A DNA stretch of 64,000 bases from Glycera tridactyla (taxonomy: Eukaryota). The translations under genes and the position numbers were made by a program. The notes under the pieces are model-generated. The model worked only from the letters and a program-made list of their open reading frames with translations. It was not told where the DNA came from and made no database searches. The DNA is taken from NCBI GenBank assembly GCA_965644265.1, contig OZ286461.1, forward strand, positions 44,082,001-44,146,000, read 5' to 3'. Shown here piece by piece: positions 8,201-20,800 of this stretch (position 1 is its first letter; every line of letters starts with the position of its first letter).

Positions 8201-11200
8201 TTATCTATTTCAAACCATTCCATCTTGAAAAGGTATCAGAAAAAAAACTACATTTCAGATTTCAAGTCAGAATGTGTCTGATTAGTGACCATATCTGAAG
8301 TCTTTCAATTTGATACCATCAGCATTTGAAACCCCCCTAGGATGATATGTAAACAATAATCAAGTACAATACATCTAAATTTACTCACTTCAACTATCTC
8401 CTGGTGGGATAAATTCTCATCTGAAAGAGACAACAATTCTATTTCAGAAACAAATCTTTGGATATCCATGAGATCATTTTCAAACCCCTCTGCCATTGCC
8501 CCATGTATTCTGAGAAAAATAACACATATCGAGCTCAAGTGATCAGATGTATTCATTGTGAAACACTTCTACAATGAGAAAGGAAGGTCAGTAAAATTCC
8601 GAGCAGGAAACTGATATGTGCTGTGGAAATTAATTCCTGAACTGTCCCCATTCGAAGGATCATCTGCGAAATGTATTTATCTCATTAATCCTACTTCACA
8701 ATATGATTTCCGGCAGGATAAAATGGGAGCTACATGGTCATAATGCTCTCACAAAATGGTGTCAGCTGGTCTGATTGCAAGTAAAAAATGTCTGTGACAA
8801 TTTACTGCTTCACTGGACAGTGAATAAATCTCTGGGAATTTTGTATGGAAAAGAGGAAAGACCAGAGGTTCTACCAGTATTTCAATATTCACCTGAAGAT
8901 ATGCACAAAACCTACTTTCAAAACAACAATAATCTTGTCAAAATTTGCATTATGATTAGTCCCAATTACCCTCACTTCACCCCAGTTGGTGCTGCTAAAA
9001 TTCATGAATACATTCAGCATACTAACCTTTCACTTCTGTAAGAATCTTGTCCTTGAACTTGATATACCAAGTTTTGGCTTCCCTTTCAAGTATGTCTTTC
9101 AAGATCACACTACATTTATCCATCAGATCTGTAAACAGAACAATCAGGATGAACAGTGCTTCCTGTGACAATTCCTCGATATTAAGTTGAGTGATCCATC
9201 ACGGAATCAGTCTAGTGGGTCCAGTTGACCTCGCAGGGTTGCTACTCATTTCTAAGTAAGGATATGATTTTGTTCCAGCAAAGGGTCACATCTTTGAGTG
9301 ACAGAATTTGGCAAACTATATTTTCTTCAGCCAAGACTGGTTACATTTATGAACAATCAACAGTGCGCTTACCAGACAGAGTACATAATGTTACTGTACC
9401 GAAAACATTTGCTTCATTATCTGCCATGAAAACCTGAACAGAACTTACTGAAAGGTCCTATTTGTGATAATGATGTCTTTGGCATTGAAGTATCAGTTGT
9501 CATTTCACCAGACTACTTTGGGTAATCCAAATTGATTTGCAATCCACATATAAAATCCATGAGTGATTATTTTTTCTGATTTTGAAATTGAAATTGGAGG
9601 TCCAGTATTGAATGTACACAATCTTGTCTGTCATGGTTGCCCATCTAAGTATGAGCTCTACTGCTCAATGTATGATAAAAATTGTGGAGAAAGACCTACA
9701 GCCAGAGACCAACTCTGATGAGAGACCTCTTTTTCAGGGTAGCTTTTCTATTTGACATTGTCAAATGTACCTCAGGTAAGGGACCACCTCTTTCATGACC
9801 GCTGTTTCACTGTATGACAACACAGTATGCCAATCTTCAATTTGTAGTAGTATTATTGACTATGTACACTGATATACAAACAGCTTTACTTGATAACAAA
9901 GACCTACCTTTGCTGAAGAGCCGTAGATCAATTTCTTGACCTTTAGGTGTTTGAAATCGATAAGGAACTGGTGGTGGGCGTATATCAGCTGTCTGAAATG
10001 GAAAATACAAATGAAATGGTCAATATGACTCACCATCTATAGCCTCCATAGCTACAGATATTTTCCATGTATTCATTGCAGAAAAAATTCACATCCTAAT
10101 CCCAACAATAGATTGATATCAGATTCTAAACATAGCCTTCACTGAAGGCGGACCTCGTCTCAACGAAGCCAACTCGAATGCCTCAAATATATGTAACACA
10201 TAGATAACCCAACTCATGCTGTGGAAATCAATTTTCAAACAAAGGTTGGATCTATCAGCTGATGCTCATCAGAAGTCACGTCTGGTTCACATTTACATTT
10301 TTGTCCCCAAAATCAAGCAAGGTTGTCATCAGTCCCCATCCATTGCAGGCATTTGTGAAAGAATGCTATGAAAGGCATCTGTGTCAAGTTTAGTGTGTGG
10401 CTAGGGGCAGCAACAATCTTTAGGAAAAATCCATTTCTGAAAATCCACTTTTGTCCCAAAAATCGATCAGCATTGTCAGGAACCCTGATCCCTTGCTGGC
10501 ATTCATTAGAGAATGATATAAATTGCATCTGTATCAAGTTTGGAGTGGCTACGGACAGCCAACATCTTTAGAAAAATCCATTTCTGAAAAAACAATTTTC
10601 ACCCCAAAACCAACCAGGCCTGTTGGGAGACCCCATCTATGGCTAGCATTCATTAGGGAATGATGTCAAGTACATCTTTACCAAGTATGCTGTGGCTACG
10701 GACAGCCAACATCTTCAGAAAAATCCATTTCTGAAAAAGCAATTTTCACCCCAAACACAACCAGTCCTGTTGGGAGACCCCATCTATGGCTAGCATTCAT
10801 TAGGAAATGCTATTAAGTACATCTGTACCAAGTATGGTGCGGCTATGGACAGCCACTTTCTTTAGAGAAATCCTTTTCTGAAAAACCAATTTTCACCCCC
10901 AAACCCACCAGGCCTAATGGGAGACCCCATCAATGGCTAGCATTCATTAGGGAATTCTATTAAGTACATCTGTACCAAGTATGATGCGGCTATGGCCAGC
11001 GACCTTCTTTAGAAAATTCCATTTCTGAAAAAGCGATTTTCACCCCAAAACCAACCAGGCCTGTTGGGAGACCCCATCTATGGCTAGCATTCAACAGGGA
11101 ATGCTATGAACTACATCCATGCTAAGTTTGCTGAGGCTACAGACAGCCAACATCTTCAGGAAAATCCATTTCTGAAAAAGCAATTTTCACCCCAAAACCA

Positions 11201-14200
11201 ACCAGGCCTAATGGGAGACCCTATTTATGGCTAGCATTCATTAGGGAATGCTATTAAGTACATCTGTACCAAGTATGGTGTTGCTATGAACAGCCACCTT
11301 CTTTAGAAAAGTCCATTTCTGAAGAAGCAATTTTCACCCCAAAACCAACCAGGCCTGTTAGGAGACCCCATCTATGGCAAGCGTCCATGAGGGAATGCTA
11401 TGAATTACATCCATGCCAAGTTTGCTGAGACTACAGACAGCCAACATCTTCAGGAAAATCCATTTCTGAAAAAACAATTTTCACCCCAAAACCAACCAGG
11501 CCTGTTGGGAGACCCCATCAATGGCTAGCATTCACTAGGGAATGCTATCAAGTACATCTGTACCAAGTATGGTGTGGCTATGAACAGCCACCTTCTTTAG
11601 AAAAATCCGTTTCTGAAAAAAGCAATTTTCACCCCAAAACCAACCAGGCCTGTTAGGAGACCCCATCTATGGCAAGCATCCATGAGGGAATGCTATGAAC
11701 TACATCCATGCTAAGTTTGCTGAGGCTACAGACAGCCAACATCTTCAGGAAAATCCATTTCTGAAAAAAACAATTTTCACCCCAAAACCAACCAGGCCTG
11801 TTGGGAGACCCCATCTATGGCTAGCATTCATTAGGGAATGATGTCAAGTACATCTGTATCAAGGATGCTGTGGCTACGGACAGTCAACATCTTCAGAAAA
11901 ATCCATTTCTGAAAAAGCAATTTTCACCCCAAACACAACCAGTCCTGTTGGGAGACCCCATCTATGGCTAGCATTCATTAGGAAATGCTATTAAGTACAT
12001 CAGTACCAAGTATGATGTGGCTATGGACAGCCATTTTCTTTAGAGAAATCCTTTTCTGAAAAACCAATTTTCACCCCAGACTCACCAGGCCTAATGGGAG
12101 ACTCCATCAATGGCTAGCATTCATTAGGGAATTCTATCAAGTACATCTGTACCAAGTATGATGCGGCTATGGCCAGCGACCTTCTTTAGAAAATTCCATT
12201 TCTGAAAAAGCGATTTTCACCCCAAAACCAACCAGGCCAGTTGGGAGCCCCCATCTATGGCTAGCATTCAACAGGGAATGCTATGAACCACATCCATGCT
12301 AAGTTTGCTGAGGCTACAGACAGCCAACATCTTCAGGAAAATCCATTTCTGAAACAACAATTTTCACCCCAAAACCAACCAGGCCTGTTGGGAGACCCCA
12401 TCAATCAGGGTCTTAGCCAGCCACAGAAGATAGGGTGTCCAATTTTTTCCTGATCGAGAAAATTAACGCGGTCGACCTTTTTCTAGAACCAAAAAAATAA
12501 CGCGGTCGACCTTTTTCTAGAACTACAAAAATTAATGCAGACAATGAATTCCTGTTAACTTAAATACTACATGAAATAAGGATTTCTCAAATATACTATG
12601 CTAACCTGACCTTTGTTTGATCAATTTACAGATGAAGACTATTACATATTTGACAGAAGCAGACCCAACTAATAGACAGATTTACAGATTTATGTACAAA
12701 TCTTTATTGCCACATAAGATCACAGAATCACATATAGGTGGTACACATTAATATATGGTGAGTCTGATAACATTAACAGGATAATAACAGCTTCAAACAG
12801 ACTGACCTAAATTTTGCTGCAGTAATTGCAATAAACTTTTTCCCACATGATAATCACTAAGAGTGCACCAGAGTCAATAAACTGGGGATAAACATATGAC
12901 CATGTTGCAATTTGGCAAGGCATTGGCCATAGAAATATCAATTGAACCATGTTGGGTTGGAGAGTGCAGTGAAGTTGATCAATGAAAGATAATTTTACAC
13001 AGTTGATGTCAAGGCATTGACCATGAAAATATCACATAAAACATCTTTTGTTAAGAGTGGTTGCTATGGAGTAAATGGATGAAAATGAAAATCACATACT
13101 ATGCTTAGACATCATTAGAATAAATGAATAAAAGATGGCAACATGACTAGACTAGGTATTGGTTATGAAATATCATGTATATCACATAAAAGCATATTTG
13201 ATTGAGGTGAAATCACTGAAATGAAAATGACCATGTTGTGGATGGCAAGGTATTTGCTATGAGAATATCACATGAAACTATATTTGGTTGGCGTGAGAAC
13301 ATTGAAATATATGACCATGTTGCAATAGGGCAAGGCATTGGCCATGGAAATGAGACAAAATAGGCTGGGTTGGAGGGTACACTGAAGTCAATAAATGGAA
13401 AGATGAAATCAGAATGAGAGCATTTATAACCTTCTTGGATTTTGTAAGAAATTTTCAAGGGCCAGGTCAAAGTTGAATTTGTCAAGGGGGACATTGGCAT
13501 AAGAAATGCGAATCAGCCGATCTAGTGTTACTAGTTCCATCTGAACTCTGGCACGTGATTTGATGCGATTCTGGCAGGAGAACACTCTCTCTGCCTCAGC
13601 ATTTCCAACCAAAACACAAAGACATAAGGTAAACAACTTAAAGAGCTCCTTGAAAATTCTCCTATTCTGGTGGTTCATGCCACCAAACATGGCCTCCAGC
13701 AACTGAGCGGGACGTCTCTTGTGTGTGACTCCATCAGCATCAACCTCCTGAATCCGAAGGTTGAAAACCTCTCGCTTGAAAGGAAGAAATTCTCCCAAAC
13801 ACTCATCCCTGCTAACAAGTGGGGCGAAAACCCTACCATCCCGGTTTGTTTGCCTACTGCCATAGTGATTCAATAATACATTGAGATGATCATATCCCCA
13901 GAATGCCAAATGAGTGTCATCATCTCCATATGCAGCTGGATCGAAAATCTGCATGGCTGTCAAAAGCTCGACATTGGGGAAACGAGCATCCAAATTGGCC
14001 AATAGCTTATCAAGTACCGCATGTTTATTTCGAATAAACATAGTTTGCTGGTCAACCAACTGCCCACGTCTGGGTTTATTCTTTAGCTGGACACCACAGT
14101 ACTCACCATTCTTTTCATGTAGCTCATCTGTGAGTTTGGACATATATGTGCCATGTTCATCATACATCAGTCTCAAGTTTCCCTTGCAGTTCTCAAGTTT

Positions 14201-17200
14201 CTCTCCAATGCATTCAAAGGACACATCTCTATATTGGAATAAACGGCTCAGGTGATTGGTTTCTGACAGAACATCGGCACAGAAATGTAGCAGGGCTACA
14301 AAATTATATGAAGATAGTTGGTCATATAGACCAACAGCTGTGGCCTCCTCCTGCCCTGCTTCATGTTCAAGAAGCAACATCAAAGCCTGATAATTGCGGA
14401 GCAATGCTCTAATAGACTCACCAAGAGAAAGCCACCTAATTTCAAAATGTCGCTTGAACTTGACAGTATCCAAATTCAGTATAGAGGCTAATTCATTGAA
14501 TTGGTGCAGACGATTTGGCAGTGCCTGGACAAAACTATATACAGATGCGATGATTCTCTCAATAGCCTGCATGTCTTTGATGGATTCACAGGCTTGAGAC
14601 ACAGCTAGTTGCAGTTTATGACAAACACAGTGTGCTGCCACACAGTGGGGGTTTTCATCTTTCACAAGAGCAGTCAATCCATTAATTACACCAGTCATTA
14701 CACTTGCCCCATCTGTGCCAAGACCTACCACCTTGGAGAAGGGAATCTCATAATGCTGCAAAATAGCTTTCACTGCAGTCATCAAAGTGTCAGCCTTACC
14801 ATCTGCAACAGCATTCATAGCGAGGTATGTGGTTTTCAGTTGACTTTGAGAAGATACATATCTGACTACAACAACAATATGCTTTTCCTGTGATCGATCA
14901 GTAGACTCATCTACCCCAATAGCAACAAATGGAGATCGCCTCAGATTTCCAATCAGTTCTCCCTCTAAGACATCACTCATCGATTTTAGCAACTGATTAA
15001 ATACATCAGGGCTAGTATAGGTTGCATTGGCCCCTTTTTGAAGGTGAAGAGCATCTTTATCTCCCCGATGACGAAGAAAACCAATCATACCCTTGTACTT
15101 GCAATTTGGTATTTCCTCAGCTGCACAAAAATATGCTGTCTCAAGTGCACACCGGAAGGCCAATCTCCTCTGACTCTGCATTTCGGCAACAGCTTTTTGA
15201 ATGTTCTCCCCTGATTCTGCACTGATAGCAAATTTATGAGCATCACTTCTCTCATGAACTAACAGAGTTTTCCTGCGAAAATTCTGAGTACCACTCACAA
15301 AAACAGTCTCACGGGCATGCTTAACACAAACTTTACATCTCATTTGATTTTCTTTTCTGTCATATGTCAGCCATTCAAACTCTCCCAACCAAGCATTTAC
15401 AAACTTTTTATGGCCCACAAATACTGACTCAGATAAAGTGTCAAGTGGTTTTCTGGCCTGTGAATGTGATGTCATCAACTGTGCTGGTGCTGGTAGAGGT
15501 GGGGATGAAGTGACAGTGGCATCTTGTACTGGCACTTGGATGGTTGGTGCTGGAGATGTGATTGGTACTGGTGCTGGTGAGCTTCCCTGAAGAGGCTGTG
15601 TATCTGTGAGGCCGGCATTGAGTCGTACATCGAGTTCCTCCACACTGCAATATAAACAAAGAGATTGCATGTTAAGTATAATGACCTATAACAAATCACC
15701 AGATGTTCTATACCCAAATTTTGGAATGAAATGATAAGACAAATCTTCATTGATAAGACAAATCTTTATTTTGCACCAGTAAAATGCTAGTATTTTGGCC
15801 TTAAAACAGTACATGCATGACTTAATGCCTCTACTTCATCTTGAAAGAAATTCCCAAACTTAGGTCCAGCTGATTGCATGCATGCCTGTCCCTGTGAGAT
15901 TCAATTCAATGAACAGAGACACCAGTGGCCACTGAGCGAACTACTATCCAACTGCCATCTGGTGGTACAATACATCTTGAAGGGAAGAAAAAAAGATCGT
16001 GACCCAATTAAGCAGGTGAACTGCCAGGCTGATTAATGCATTGTTTGAGCATATTGATATGATCTAGTATCATCCATAATAAACTAATAAAGTAGAAAAT
16101 CATTGTTATGCTATATATGACCAAAAGTCTGCTGTGCATCTCTCCAAAACTGTATTTGCAATGGACTATTTTTCAAGCACCTAAGGGGCTACTCCCGTTC
16201 GCAACACTCAGTTGACAGCTGTCAAATCATTCTGCCGCGATCATGAACTTACCTTTCATCAGTCACCTTGCTGTCTAGTTTGGGTTTCTTAGTGAAGAAC
16301 TGTGCAATTCCCATGGTTGGGGGCAATTTTCTCTTCCCCATGGTGGCTTCCTGACTGCTGGTGCATGCCAACAACCAAGATCTGATCACCACGAGGTCTG
16401 GGATGAAGATGTCAACAAAGGCATGCTTTCTCTCGGCAGCTCGGCTGCTTCCGACTCGGCTTCATCCCCTCTCATTGGTTGCCAGCAGAAAATCAGGCCA
16501 TGACCTCAGCTTCGGGTCAGTTTGTTGCTGTTGATTGGCCAATTTATCCCACCCACCCAAGCAAGAGCTGTGGGGTGAATATTCCCCCTCTGTTAGATTA
16601 GTGTTTATTATTGTAACCACAATCCCCGGCGACTCACGGGGATTATACAACACGGGCAATTGAAAGCATGCAGCTTTGATTGATTAGTTTCAGATTGCTC
16701 CTTTGTTTCACTGGCGCCTGGTCACTCATGGGACTGTCTGGAAAATGACAGTTAGAGCAAAACTAACATCCCTGGAATGTAGACTTTCCGGGACGCCCTG
16801 TTGGACGGCCTGGTGATTTATGGGGCCGTCTATATTTGCTGCAGGCCGTCCTTTAGACGGCTGGACGCATAGCTGGCTAACATCTTGCCATCAATGGCTA
16901 GCATTCATTAGGGAATGATGTCAAGTACATCTGTACCAAGTATGGTGTGGCTATGAACAGCCACCTTTTTTAGAAAAATCCATTTCTGAAAAAGCGATTT
17001 TCACCCCAAAACCAACCAGGCCTGTTGGGAGACCCCATCTATGGCTCACATTCACTAGGGAATGCTATGAAATGCATCTATGCCAAGTTTGGTGTGGCTA
17101 TGGATGGCCAACATCTTCAGAAAAATCCATTTCTGAAAAACCAATTTTCACCCCAAAACGAACCAGGCCTCTTGGGAGACCCCATCCATGACTTGCATTC

Positions 17201-17836
17201 ATTAAGGAATGCTATGAGATCCCTCTGTATCAAGTTTGGGGTGGCTGGGTACTGAAAAACTAACCAGAAATGACCAAGTTCATTTATTTCAAAAAAGTGA
17301 TTTTTTGCCCCAAAATCACCATCTCGCACATATCAGTCTTTCATGGGCAATATAAAATCACAGGGGATAAAGACACATGTGGAGAATCAACTGCAAACAG
17401 AACATGAATAAATCGGATCATCAGAAATAGCTCATAGATGGCTAAGTCCCATCACTTCAAAAAACCCAATTTTCATCCCAGAATTAATCAAGCAGAACAC
17501 TGGGATGCTACCTTGATGATGGCTGGATTCATTAGTAGATGTACTGAAGTATATACATGCCATATTCCATGGAGCTAGGCACTCTAGTTGCTGAGCAATG
17601 TGACTTTAACATGCCTTCAACATTGCCCCCAATGACAGAGTCCCATCACTTCAGAAAACACAAGTTTCAACCCAGAATTAATCAAGCAGAACATTGAGAT
17701 GGCACCTTGATGATGGCTGGATTCAATAGCAAATGTACTGAAGTATATGTGTGCCCAATTATATGGAGCTAGGCCCTCTAGTTGCTGAGCAAAGGGACTT
17801 CAACATGACCTTAACGCTGACCTTAACGCAGATGAG

Positions 17837-17874
<38 letters not shown>

Positions 17875-20800
17875 AGTGACCGCAATACCTCCCCTCAACT
17901 TCGTTGAGACGAGGTAAAAACCATTTACGGCTCACACTGTTAATGGTGCCTCACAGGTTTTATCATAGTGAATAGCAAAGAGGCTTGAAGACATGATCTC
18001 ATCTTTTCTTGAGAGTGCAGAGGGCAGTCAAAACTGCAGATGGCTGTACGAAATGAATGGTGGGACGAACTGAAGTGTACTCACCTTTTGCTTCAAATAT
18101 GGAACTTGTTCTTTCTCAATGATGAAATCACAAAACTGCAACCACTCAGATCTACAAATTGGCTGGAAATAGCAAAAACATAGTACTTCAGGACAGGCAA
18201 GTGATCACATGGGTCAATAAAACATGGTCCAGTTGAAGAATGTGGTACTCAGCACAATATGGTGACACATAGTCTCTAGAATTGAAATGTTCACAGTGAA
18301 ATAAATTGGCATCTACCAAGTGATGACCTCTACCTTGATTGAAGGTTGAAGTGGTCATGTGTTGACAGCCACAGTATACAGTCAAACCTCCCTATAAAGA
18401 CCGCCTTTGGTTGATAAAAAGTGGCCTTTATAGGGAGGTGGTCTTTATAGAGAGGTCATTTACTGTTGAAAATACTATTACGGTCGCAGTTCAGGGCGGT
18501 CTTTATAGGGAGGTGGCCTTAGAGGAGGTTCGACTGTATCTGGAATCAGCACTGATGCATGGGATTTGACTGGTGACTTTGACTTAGGGCTATTCCATTT
18601 ATTAAGGAGTGGGGGGGCCGGTCTGGAACCGAAATCAAAAAGCGGGGGTGGGGGGGTCTCTGAAAAATCGAAAGCGGGGGTGGGGGGGTCTCAGAAAAAT
18701 CGAAAGCGGGGGCGATATTAGGTGAAAATCGAAAGCGGGGGGCGATATTAGGGGAAAATCGGAAAGCGGGGGTTGGTGATGATCGGAAAAATTTGGAGGG
18801 GGGAAGGGCGGAAATCAGAACTTTTATGTAGGAAACCGACCAAAAACACTAAATCCGGCGACTATTAGTCAATATATTGCCGTCTGTTCGACCTGGCTCG
18901 TATTAATCATGGACGCCGCCATCTTGGTTATCAGTTGCCACCAAGCTCAACGTAAACAAACTCCGTGAACTTTTTCGATATATACACGAATAATACGGTA
19001 AAATGCCCCCAAAATGCCGGTTTCTCTTGTAAATGGCGATTAAGTGACAGAAAAATGTCAAAAACCAAAAAATACGATGAATATCGACGAACGGAACCGA
19101 AAATAATTGTGGCCATGTCTCATGTGTATCACGGGCGCTGGCCGCCATCTTGAATGCAACTACGATTCTCGCGCGAATTTTTTCATTAATCATGGATTCT
19201 TGGGATGAAAGGCTGACATGTCCCAGATTATTCTTGGAAATTACGATTGATCTTCAGACTAATGTAAATTACCAAGAAATTTGACGTATTTGTCATCTCA
19301 GCTTCGTTTTCGAAAAGCGGGGGGGGGGGGGGGGGCGCTTTCGGAAACCGGCGGCAAAAAATTAAAAAGCGGGGGTGGGGGAGGGTCAGAATAATCAAAA
19401 AGCGGGGGTGGGGGGGTGTACAAAATTTTCCTGACCGGCACCCCCACACCTTTTTAAATGGAATAGCCCTTATCATGCTAACAACAGATATGAAACAGGG
19501 TCATCCTATGACCATTTATCAACACTGCCAATATCCGCTTTATGGGAGCCTCCCATCACAAGCAGGGCTCGACGCTAATGGTTGCCCTACTGGCACAGGC
19601 AGGCAGATTTGCTGTTAGGGCAGGTGATTTTATCAATCTGCCTGCCCAATGGGCAGGTACCCAACCCTTATTTGGGCTATGATTATATGCAAAAGGGCAG
19701 GTGAAAATGACAGGAAGGCCAGGTGAAGATCCCACTTCACCTGCCCGAAGGACCGCTGAAGAAAAAAGTTAATGTAGAGCCCTGACAAGACCCTAACCAA
19801 AGAATCACTGGAGGGACTAGGTTTTGGAATTTGTGGACATCATGGGAATAAACTGAAACACAAAGTCATCAAATTGCTGGTGTTGACATATTGACAGGCA
19901 GAGTTCCTTCAAACCCTATCCATTCTGTGCATCTTGGCTTTATATGGGCCTATGAGCATGCTTCTTGGTATGCAACGATGTATATGTGCCTACAAATATG
20001 CTTATGGGCCAGCAATGTGAGCCTAAGAGAATGCTTATGGTTCTGCAATAATGTATCATATATGAGGCAAGATGAAACCATAAAGGAGAGCTTTCAAACT
20101 TACCCGGATCTCTAATTCTGCAACTAAGTACCGCATATGTTCCTGGCGCAATTTCTCATCAATCTTTCCTGGGGTGTTCCATGGCATACCAACTAAGATG
20201 TCTGAAATCCACAAAAAACATTCACCATGTTCACCCAAATATGCTGACTTCCCTCCTACTCATGTGAATTCAGGATTAGGGAGGAATCACTCGTCACAAA
20301 ATTTCAGTAACACTGCTGGAAATCTGGCAAAAAAGTAGCAGGGTAAATCCATCACAACAATGCATAATATGAGCTCTTTGAATAGGTACAGAGCTTCCAT
20401 CAGACGTCCATCAATCATTTTCTTGATAGGATATACCCACAATCAATCGATAGTTTGCCATTTTTTTTTTTTTTTTCGAAGAATGATATTTAGAAATATT
20501 CGTCATCAACTGGTATCAACATTTCAGCGAGGCAATAGCATGGGGAATCCCAAGAAATGCTGGGTTATCAAAGCATGATGAGGGATTCAAGATATGAATG
20601 ATATGAAAGTATTGTCACTCACCATTCACTCTGCTGACAAGTTTTTGTGTCAGGGCTTGCATTCTTTTAAAGGCTATACAATTTAGCAATCTGTTCCGTA
20701 GTTAGTCACAGCTTGTTTGCATCAATGCTTACTAGAGAAAAAAAATGTTTGTTTTTTTTGTAAGAGTGATTTGTCATACTCCTGAGGAAAAGTGACTGAC

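Follow-up and report, generated by a model that had tools for sequence, protein, structure and literature searches.

The closest described systems are the HINEs, which are defined by a subTIR, an inverted repeat (IR), a microsatellite, tandem repeats, and a 3′ subTIR with palindrome, and which insert at TT without target-site duplication (TSD) (PMC4067079; PMC7492417). For the DINE-1/HINE families, autonomous Helentron partners have been identified, with 95-98% identity (Thomas et al. 2014, PMC4067079).

The window, i.e., the whole 64,000-nucleotide stretch of Glycera tridactyla DNA analyzed here, contains an element of 7,793 bp at 10128-17920 (minus strand), measuring 3,303 bp after subtraction of an inserted hAT transposon and one copy of its target duplication. 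None of the structural hallmarks of a HINE (non-autonomous Helentron) is missing from it, which supports its classification as such. The plan of the family was derived from 20 copies fetched besides the window's copy. All 20 had the same ends and the same module order: T-run, 5′ subTIR plus complementary repeat, (GACGCC)n, 194-bp units, 147-bp array, 3′ subTIR, and hairpin. The G. tridactyla genome (2.04 Gb) holds approximately 2,640 paired copies. The locus can be read with high confidence as a HINE that resides in a T-run and has a modular interior, the array of which was remodelled in place before a young hAT was inserted.

Compared with the oyster Cg_HINE elements (PMC7492417), the Glycera family has the same succession of a 5′ subTIR, a complementary IR, a short GC-rich microsatellite containing GTC, a variable segment, a satellite-like array, a 3′ subTIR, and a palindrome. 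Also shared are T-rich insertion without TSD, dispersal in both orientations, and variable array length. The Glycera host belongs to another phylum, however, and the likeness described here concerns the structural plan. The Glycera subTIR is 17 nt long vs. 11-12 nt in oyster, the monomer measures 147 bp vs. mostly 160-180 bp, and the pair of 194-bp units is extra to the Glycera family. The DINE-1/HINE elements of Drosophila, mite, and mosquito (Thomas et al. 2014, PMC4067079) likewise have subTIRs, a microsatellite, central repeats, and a 3′ stem-loop; in addition, the 5′ half of their IR lies inside the 5′ subTIR, strings of T mark their boundaries, and TT is the target, as in Glycera.

The element's own 5′-to-3′ direction is the minus strand of the window, which places the HINE 3′ hairpin at the left end (10135-10149). 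The 5′ subTIR, ACCTCGTCTCAACGAAG (minus strand), is located at 17899-17915, 5 nt from the terminus, and the 3′ subTIR (minus strand) at 10152-10168, approximately 21-23 nt from the terminus. The left-end ACCTCGTCTCAACGAAG (10152-10168) matches its reverse complement (17899-17915) over 17/17 nt, as originally predicted, and the two form the sole perfect inverted pair of 17-nt length in 9900-18200. A genome-wide search for this 17-mer, allowing up to one mismatch, returned 2,640 forward and 2,642 reverse matches, compared with 8 and 9 for a reversed control pattern; both subTIRs were kept in 20/20 sampled copies. A short inverted repeat, TTGAGGGGAGG (17888-17898, minus strand), pairs with the 5′ subTIR and was present in all sampled copies. 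The resulting stem-loop (17880-17922) has a folding energy of −10.1 kcal/mol (z = −5.4 vs. shuffles). The 3′ palindrome, GCCTTCAGTGAAGGC (10135-10149, minus strand), has a 6-bp stem and a 3-nt loop, and was likewise found in all sampled copies; the 3′ terminus, at a distance of 5-7 nt, falls inside the 10128-10130 run (TATGTTT, minus strand). The terminal 47 nt (10126-10172, minus strand) folded with z = −3.6 vs. shuffles. The terminal hairpin that had been predicted was thus recovered, and the 5′ end folds as well. The two ends are asymmetric in the spacing of their subTIRs, with a hairpin at each.

Similarity among the 20 other copies starts at (A)nCATAGCC and stops at GACGAGGT(A)n, and the boundaries of the window's copy fall within terminal A-runs (10128-10130 and 17916-17920). 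The outer limits in the original prediction, 10128-17920, match these boundaries, apart from the ambiguity of the terminal A-runs, and all parts described there were found at the positions given. Three paralogous empty sites, a test that had been proposed with that prediction, were found and agree with the same boundaries. They place the insertion within a plus-strand A-run, which is a T-run in the element's own orientation, and the filled sites have 2-3 A more than the empty ones. Beyond the bases of the run, no target duplication was seen at these three sites; in a homopolymer target of this kind, a short duplication of A alone could nevertheless be present.

An autonomous partner was sought among Helitron_like_N loci, of which the genome holds at least 104. 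Ten-kb pieces at 20 of these were read, half of them without a Rep domain (minus-strand matches). Neither the subTIR (up to three mismatches) nor any 11-mer of it occurred in the 20 pieces, half of which lacked Rep, and no likeness to the HINE ends was detected there. An endonuclease domain is the feature that sets Helentrons apart from Helitrons, and none was seen in the four long Rep/PIF1 ORFs scanned. A 12.3-kb subTIR pair on contig C1 had no Rep match among the at least 104 Helitron_like_N loci. While partners are known for DINE-1/HINE families (PMC4067079), none was found for the Glycera family in the 20 ten-kb pieces, half of them without Rep.

This outcome would also be expected if the outer element were not of the rolling-circle type but a cut-and-paste MITE that has inverted repeats and produces a short A-rich target duplication. 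The perfect 17-nt inverted repeat fits such an element, as do the 2-3 additional A at filled compared with empty sites, which an AAA duplication of 2-3 bp would produce likewise. However, the inverted repeats are not terminal but subterminal, 5 nt from one end and ~21-23 nt from the other. The true termini, CATAGCC... and ...GACGAGGT, do not repeat each other in inverted form, and the number of extra A differs from site to site. Moreover, the combination of IR, microsatellite, tandem repeats, and 3′ palindrome is the published HINE signature, and a MITE is accordingly considered very unlikely. For the HINE, movement of the family by rolling-circle transposition (peel-and-paste) may be assumed, in which the Rep/helicase of a Helentron would recognize the subTIR and hairpin ends.

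Inside the HINE, a (GACGCC)6 microsatellite (17837-17873, minus strand; 4 to 13 units in other copies) is followed by two 194-bp units (17445-17812, minus strand), which were found in most sampled copies. A 194-bp unit and the 147-bp monomer share one short similar stretch, a weak 24-nt match. The array itself is divided into part 1 at 10361-12405 (minus strand; 13.9 monomers, repeat detection 10361-12402) and part 2 at 16888-17246 (minus strand; 2.4 monomers), the first 8 nt of part 2 being the second copy of the hAT target duplication. Because 147 is divisible by 3, the array was considered as a repeated coding domain. Long frames in the HINE run only through the array, 51% of the 152 monomers examined were free of stops in the best frame, and no Pfam match reached its family threshold; this possibility was rejected, and the HINE has no coding capacity. 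No known RNA families were found in 9800-18300.

Throughout the HINE family, the 147-bp array is a constitutive module. Comparison of array length among copies, which had been suggested as a check, showed that the array is present in 20/20 sampled copies with approximately 2 to 16 monomers, and therefore predates the HINE insertion at this locus. The location of the monomer had been proposed as a further check: among the monomer clusters listed for the first 42 Mb of contig C1, 22/28 adjoin a subTIR of the family, and all 28 span at most 3 kb. Classical satellite DNA is characterized by homogeneous arrays of tens of kb or more that lie outside mobile elements. Genome-wide, approximately 30,650 monomer motifs were counted vs. 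approximately 22,400 expected from the ~2,640 complete copies. In the window's array, monomers 2-5 and 10-13 are 95-98% alike, compared with 82-89% for neighboring monomers. Arrays of different HINE copies are not colinear and align at no more than 88%, while their flanks are 93-97% alike. This blockwise likeness, together with the lack of colinearity between copies, indicates that arrays change in place, and such turnover can be shown in the window's HINE copy. HINE arrays thus evolve in place much faster than the flanks of the element.

The same two contrasts, within the array and between copies, could also be taken to mean that the window's HINE copy is where the satellite originated, or is now originating, de novo, as in the original prediction of a satellite being born inside a mobile element. 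The monomer is already carried by every sampled copy, however, and its motifs are spread over the genome in the numbers given above, with most sampled clusters beside the subTIR. A birth in this copy is therefore highly improbable, and the prediction did not hold on this point. Remodelling of an array inherited with the HINE is preferred.

The insert in the array is a hAT transposon of 4,482 bp (12406-16887, minus strand). It has imperfect TIRs of 16 nt with 13/16 matches (12406-12421 and 16872-16887) and is flanked by an exact 8-bp TSD, CCATCAAT, the left copy at 12398-12405 and the right copy at 16888-16895. Subterminal repeats of 34 bp (12459-12535, 2.2 copies) are candidate transposase binding sites. 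Two further copies of the hAT, 99.1-99.6% identical, were found elsewhere in the genome. The ends are identical across the three copies and each has its own 8-bp duplication, CCATCAAT here, and GTACCAAG and CCCCTTTT elsewhere. A 780-bp non-autonomous relative, flanked by the 8-bp duplication ATTGAAGG, was located in unrelated DNA, and motifs related to the 34-bp repeats occur at its ends.

The transposase ORF (13424-15670, minus strand) encodes 748 aa to the first in-frame ATG and is open in all three hAT copies. Exon 2 likely starts at 15644. Upstream, a putative exon 1 (16253-16341, minus strand; 29 codons plus 2 nt) with a GCCACC-ATG-G start context and a GT donor, and a putative intron (15645-16252, minus strand) with an AG acceptor, were read from the sequence and are kept in the three copies, which suggests a two-exon gene model. 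Searches were performed with the exon-2 ORF alone. Pfam matches were obtained to zf-C17orf113 (50.1 bits), DUF4371 (39.5), and Dimer_Tnp_hAT (21.8, cut-off 21.4). Among 12 relatives, D254, D320, W413, and the C348/H351 motif are invariant, and E694 is conserved in at least 90%; by analogy with hAT motifs, D254, D320, and E694 would be the catalytic triad. A sequence search for solved structures matching the transposase found none. With the hAT superfamily the element shares the 8-bp TSD, short imperfect TIRs that begin with CAG, a zinc finger at the N-terminus, a DDE core in which W and CxxH are conserved, and a hAT dimerisation region at the C-terminus. The most similar proteins, from echinoderms, chiton, and amphioxus, carry the annotation "zinc finger protein 862-like" or "C17orf113-like", the nearest relative being only 55% identical over part of the protein. 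In vertebrates, ZNF862 is a host gene by database name, whereas the Glycera copy, with its ends and duplications, is mobile. With its 748-aa ORF, hAT domains, TIRs, and 8-bp TSD, the transposon looks intact, as had been predicted. Judging from open ORFs in three copies that are 0.4-0.9% apart, it may still be active.

When the hAT and one copy of CCATCAAT were removed in silico, a single array of 16.3 copies was obtained with unshifted register. The array is thus cleanly split by the hAT, as described in the original prediction. Uninterrupted monomers of the same array contain CCATCAATGGCTAGC and thereby provide built-in empty sites for the hAT. The order of insertion, HINE first and hAT much later, can be read from the locus and is supported: apart from the restored register, the HINE copy diverges by 2-2.6% from its family consensus vs. 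0.4-0.9% between the hAT copies, which fits this order. In this respect the prediction is borne out. The "three-layer nest" it described is reduced to two elements and one insertion event, as the satellite belongs to the HINE. Foreign inserts were present in 8/20 sampled HINE copies; nesting is thus common, and both elements and such nesting are ordinary in the G. tridactyla genome.

Helitron-type elements copy whatever sits between their ends. The HINE might on this ground have taken up the hAT before transposing and carried it to the present site, or might later have spread the composite, and a second hAT copy indeed lies inside a 147-bp array too. However, the hAT/array junction, CCATCAAT+CAGGGTCTTAGCCAGCC, occurs just once in the genome; its sole near match (two mismatches) is the 780-bp non-autonomous relative in unrelated DNA. 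The second copy lies on chromosome 1 (contig C1, locus L021) in an array whose monomer is of unrelated sequence, and the duplication there is different. The HINE copy is, moreover, far older than the hAT. An apparent common "insert" in loci L016 and L020 was considered as cargo and rejected, as it proved to be a nested copy from a related HINE subfamily, which has a subTIR of its own that differs by one mismatch. The search for other HINE copies with the same junction, proposed earlier as a check, thus returned none, and the other hAT copies have their own flanks and duplications. Although movement of the hAT as HINE cargo is conceivable mechanistically, nothing shows such transport given the unique junction, and this history is extremely improbable; direct insertion of the hAT into the resident array is preferred. 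Mis-joins are frequent in repeat-rich regions, but an assembly artefact is hardly credible here, as the 8-bp duplication is exact and not expected from a mis-join, removal of the insert restores the 147-bp register base for base, and the hAT ends are the same as in two other copies with duplications of their own.

Near-identical hAT copies lie in 147-bp arrays of unrelated sequence in 2/3 cases. Arrays of the present monomer account for only approximately 0.2% of the genome; in 256 kb of other sampled DNA, approximately 4.6% consisted of tandem repeats with a period of at least 100 bp. It is conceivable, though unlikely, that the young ZNF862-like hAT favors integration or retention in ~147-bp (nucleosome-length) arrays carried by HINE-type elements. 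This idea is weakened by the hAT copy on C18 and by older hAT fragments (L024 and L025), which lie outside tandem arrays. If true, other transposons would find landing pads or safe havens in HINE arrays, and an autonomous hAT lodged there could now and then be copied through rolling-circle transposition.

With the anatomy, structural family membership, copy numbers, empty sites, order of events, and relative ages of the locus established, the following course is highly probable for the HINE and its insert. A HINE-type non-autonomous Helentron inserted in a T-run, probably within an intron, in minus-strand orientation. It brought along the (GACGCC)n repeat, two 194-bp units, and the 147-bp array, as in the rest of the ~2,600-copy family. 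After insertion, the array was remodelled, with a block of approximately 4 or 5 monomers duplicated at a distance of eight monomers. A young autonomous hAT of the "ZNF862-like/C17orf113-like" clade integrated much later, by cut-and-paste, into one monomer, producing the 8-bp duplication CCATCAAT.

The role of HINEs as satellite carriers has already been published for oysters and flies. With that role described and nested insertions present in 8/20 sampled copies, no new question is opened by this locus. It is a textbook case of a satellite-spreading non-autonomous Helentron-type element that received a recent hAT with a readable target duplication. Its value lies mostly in annotation: for G. 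tridactyla, a HINE family of approximately 2,600 copies is provided with exact ends and correct orientation, and a low-copy hAT, probably still active, is defined together with its non-autonomous relatives.

The HINE of the window (G000:C7:44,082,001-44,146,000 of the 2.04-Gb assembly), a non-autonomous Helentron, lies at 10128-17920. The region 9800-18300 was read and scanned, and the perfect sub-TIRs and the terminal hairpin of the original prediction were both recovered. The subterminal inverted repeat (subTIR) is a perfect 17-nt pair, ACCTCGTCTCAACGAAG, at 10152-10168 and 17899-17915. Between these sites, a 147-bp tandem array is parted into two pieces, at 10361-12402 (13.9 copies) and 16888-17246 (2.4 copies), by a 4.5-kb insert carrying a minus-strand ORF of 748 aa. 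Two 194-bp units (17445-17812) and a (GACGCC)6 microsatellite (17837-17873) complete the interior.

The element was compared with the HINE definitions of Thomas et al. 2014 (PMC4067079) and Vojvoda Zeljko et al. 2020 (PMC7492417). All parts of the published plan are present on the minus strand of the window, which is therefore taken as the 5′-to-3′ direction of the element. The 5′ end consists of a T-run followed by the 5′ subTIR, 5 nt from the terminus, and a short complementary repeat, TTGAGGGGAGG, pairs with this subTIR into a stem-loop (-10.1 kcal/mol, z = -5.4). Microsatellite, variable segment, central tandem repeats and 3′ subTIR follow in that order. At the 3′ end, the left end in the window, the palindrome GCCTTCAGTGAAGGC (10135-10149) provides the hairpin and is followed by TATGTTT as the final bases of the element; the terminal 47-nt fold has z = -3.6.

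Published Helentrons and HINEs insert at a TT target, with a variable T-string belonging to the element and no target site duplication. Because some copies of the present family sit in other repeats, empty sites could be searched for among the fetched loci. In the three paralogous empty sites obtained, both flanks were contiguous and the insertion point fell within an A-run (T on the element strand); filled sites carried 2-3 extra A and no further duplication, in agreement with the published behavior. The extra A would also be compatible with a cut-and-paste MITE making a duplication purely of A, but the true termini are asymmetric and not inverted copies of each other, which argues against this reading.

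No coding capacity was found in the HINE family. Long frames are confined to the array, the period of which is divisible by three, and of 152 monomers, only 51% are free of stops in the best array frame. HINE frames yielded no Pfam family over threshold, and no Rfam family matched the HINE. At least 104 Helitron_like_N loci exist in the genome, and open frames of 1,500-2,800 codons are present in many of them. Four were scanned: all encode Rep and PIF1 helicase and two an OTU protease domain, while an endonuclease domain was not detectable in these four frames, two of which extend past the end of the piece examined. Twenty ten-kb pieces from the at least 104 Rep loci, searched for an autonomous partner, held no subTIR, subTIR 11-mer or similarity to the HINE ends. 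At each of two related Helitron-type loci with Rep/helicase, a 22-bp tandem array with over 40 units lies immediately upstream of the long ORF (L038:1485-2543 and L045:1867-2790), so tandem repeats can also be held by rolling-circle elements of this genome that do code.

The insert is a hAT of 4,482 bp (12406-16887), its TIRs matching at 13 of 16 positions. As claimed originally, it interrupts the array cleanly with an exact 8-bp duplication, CCATCAAT, at both sides; when the hAT and one copy of CCATCAAT were taken out, the two pieces joined in register into one array of 16.3 copies, and intact monomers of this array read CCATCAATGGCTAGC across the insertion site. With the duplication exact and the register restored, an assembly artefact joining hAT and array is very unlikely. 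Two further copies were found in the genome: one on contig C1 (L021, G000:C1:98056500-98061650; 19 differences in 4,482 bp, duplication GTACCAAG) and one on C18 (40 substitutions and a 257-bp non-coding deletion, duplication CCCCTTTT). The C1 copy also lies inside a 147-bp array, with a monomer unrelated to that of the window. Two of the three young copies are thus in 147-bp arrays; the third and two older fragments are not. Older fragments have ∼88% identity, and the first 103 bases of the hAT gave many ∼100-bp matches at 77-78% identity, similar ends numbering dozens. One of these short matches belongs to a 780-bp non-autonomous relative (L023:1836-2615), which has near-perfect TIRs, CAGGGTATTAGCTAGCC..., matching those of the hAT, and an exact 8-bp duplication, ATTGAAGG.

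The 748-aa ORF, open in all three copies, matches zf-C17orf113, DUF4371 and Dimer_Tnp_hAT. Using this exon-2 ORF alone as query, the closest relatives (at most 55% identity) were annotated as 'zinc finger protein 862-like' in echinoderms, chiton and amphioxus. Across 12 aligned relatives, D254, D320, W413 and C348/H351 were invariant and E694 was kept in at least 90%; in line with known hAT motifs, we take D254, D320 and E694 to be the DDE triad, W413 the conserved tryptophan and C348/H351 the CxxH motif. An 89-nt segment upstream of the ORF combines a strong start context with a GT donor; paired with the AG acceptor at 15645, it points to a putative two-exon transposase gene of 769 codons.

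The predicted readability of the insertion order held: the window HINE has diverged by 2-2.6% from the consensus of its family, against 0.4-0.9% between hAT copies, making the nesting order also the age order. The hAT had been proposed as possible HINE cargo; the hAT/array junction was found nowhere else in the genome, meaning that the composite was not copied. On the minus strand, open frames that resemble exons and have borders like splice sites lie at either side of the HINE (9840-10019 and 18031-18204). Judged from these frames, a minus-strand gene probably holds the whole nest in an ∼8 kb intron, with HINE and transposase both oriented like that gene. At 18421-18772, immediately downstream of the HINE, short tandem motifs rich in G, with periods of 17, 30 and 32, resemble sequence adjoining a hAT-related end in L026, another locus of this genome, and are probably another interspersed repeat family.

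A genome-wide search for the 17-nt subTIR (at most 1 mismatch) gave 2,640 forward and 2,642 reverse matches, against 8 and 9 for the reversed pattern; those listed are mostly plus/minus pairs 1.7-6 kb apart. The first 20 pairs on C1, anchored on the subTIR, were taken as a family sample. All 20 share, in window orientation, the left end (A)n-CATAGCCTTCACTGAAGGCGG-subTIR and the right end CCGCAATACCTCCCCTCAA-subTIR-(A)n, beyond which similarity breaks off sharply. Most keep the same module order: ∼260 bp of unique or degenerate sequence, the 147-bp array, an ∼200 bp spacer, two 194-bp units and (GACGCC)n. Uninterrupted copies measure 1.76-3.56 kb and hold 6 to 16.4 monomers; the window HINE without its hAT (3,303 bp, 16.3 monomers) is at the upper end of this range. 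Nesting is common in the family, foreign inserts of at least 250 bp being present in 8 of the 20 copies: TIR elements, other HINE-type elements and a Penelope-like element. The last of these (L019:1495-3429, minus strand) encodes reverse transcriptase and GIY-YIG nuclease domains in one ORF of 644 aa. L016 and L020 contain nested copies of a related subfamily, with a subTIR one base off (CTTCGTTGAGGCGAGGT) and a different interior, so HINE-in-HINE insertion occurs.

Periods of 145-147 bp, matching the length of nucleosome-core DNA, are shared by four tandem-repeat families without detectable mutual similarity (L004, L015, L016, L021 and window 10361-17246). At least one, the 145-bp family of L015, has a short inverted repeat and hairpin of its own at its borders, in the manner of another HINE family.

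A conserved 24-nt motif of the window monomer (at most 2 mismatches) occurs 30,650 times genome-wide and 0 times in the control. With 8.5 motifs per copy on average (21 copies), ∼2,640 complete elements would explain roughly 22,400 of these. In the first 42 Mb of C1, 28 monomer clusters were listed, all spanning at most 3 kb; 22 of them are inside or beside a subTIR match, so among these clusters the monomer does not occur mostly outside such termini. The structure described originally is confirmed and its interpretation supported in part: the order of insertion stands, but the satellite being born in this copy does not, the 147-bp array being a standing module of the HINE family. Unique flanks of different HINE copies show a mean pairwise identity of 93% and lie 1-5% from consensus, whereas arrays align colinearly at no more than 88%. 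Within the window array, monomers 2-5 and 10-13 are 95-98% identical, against 82-89% for neighboring monomers, which marks a local block duplication after insertion. Arrays of HINE copies thus change in place.
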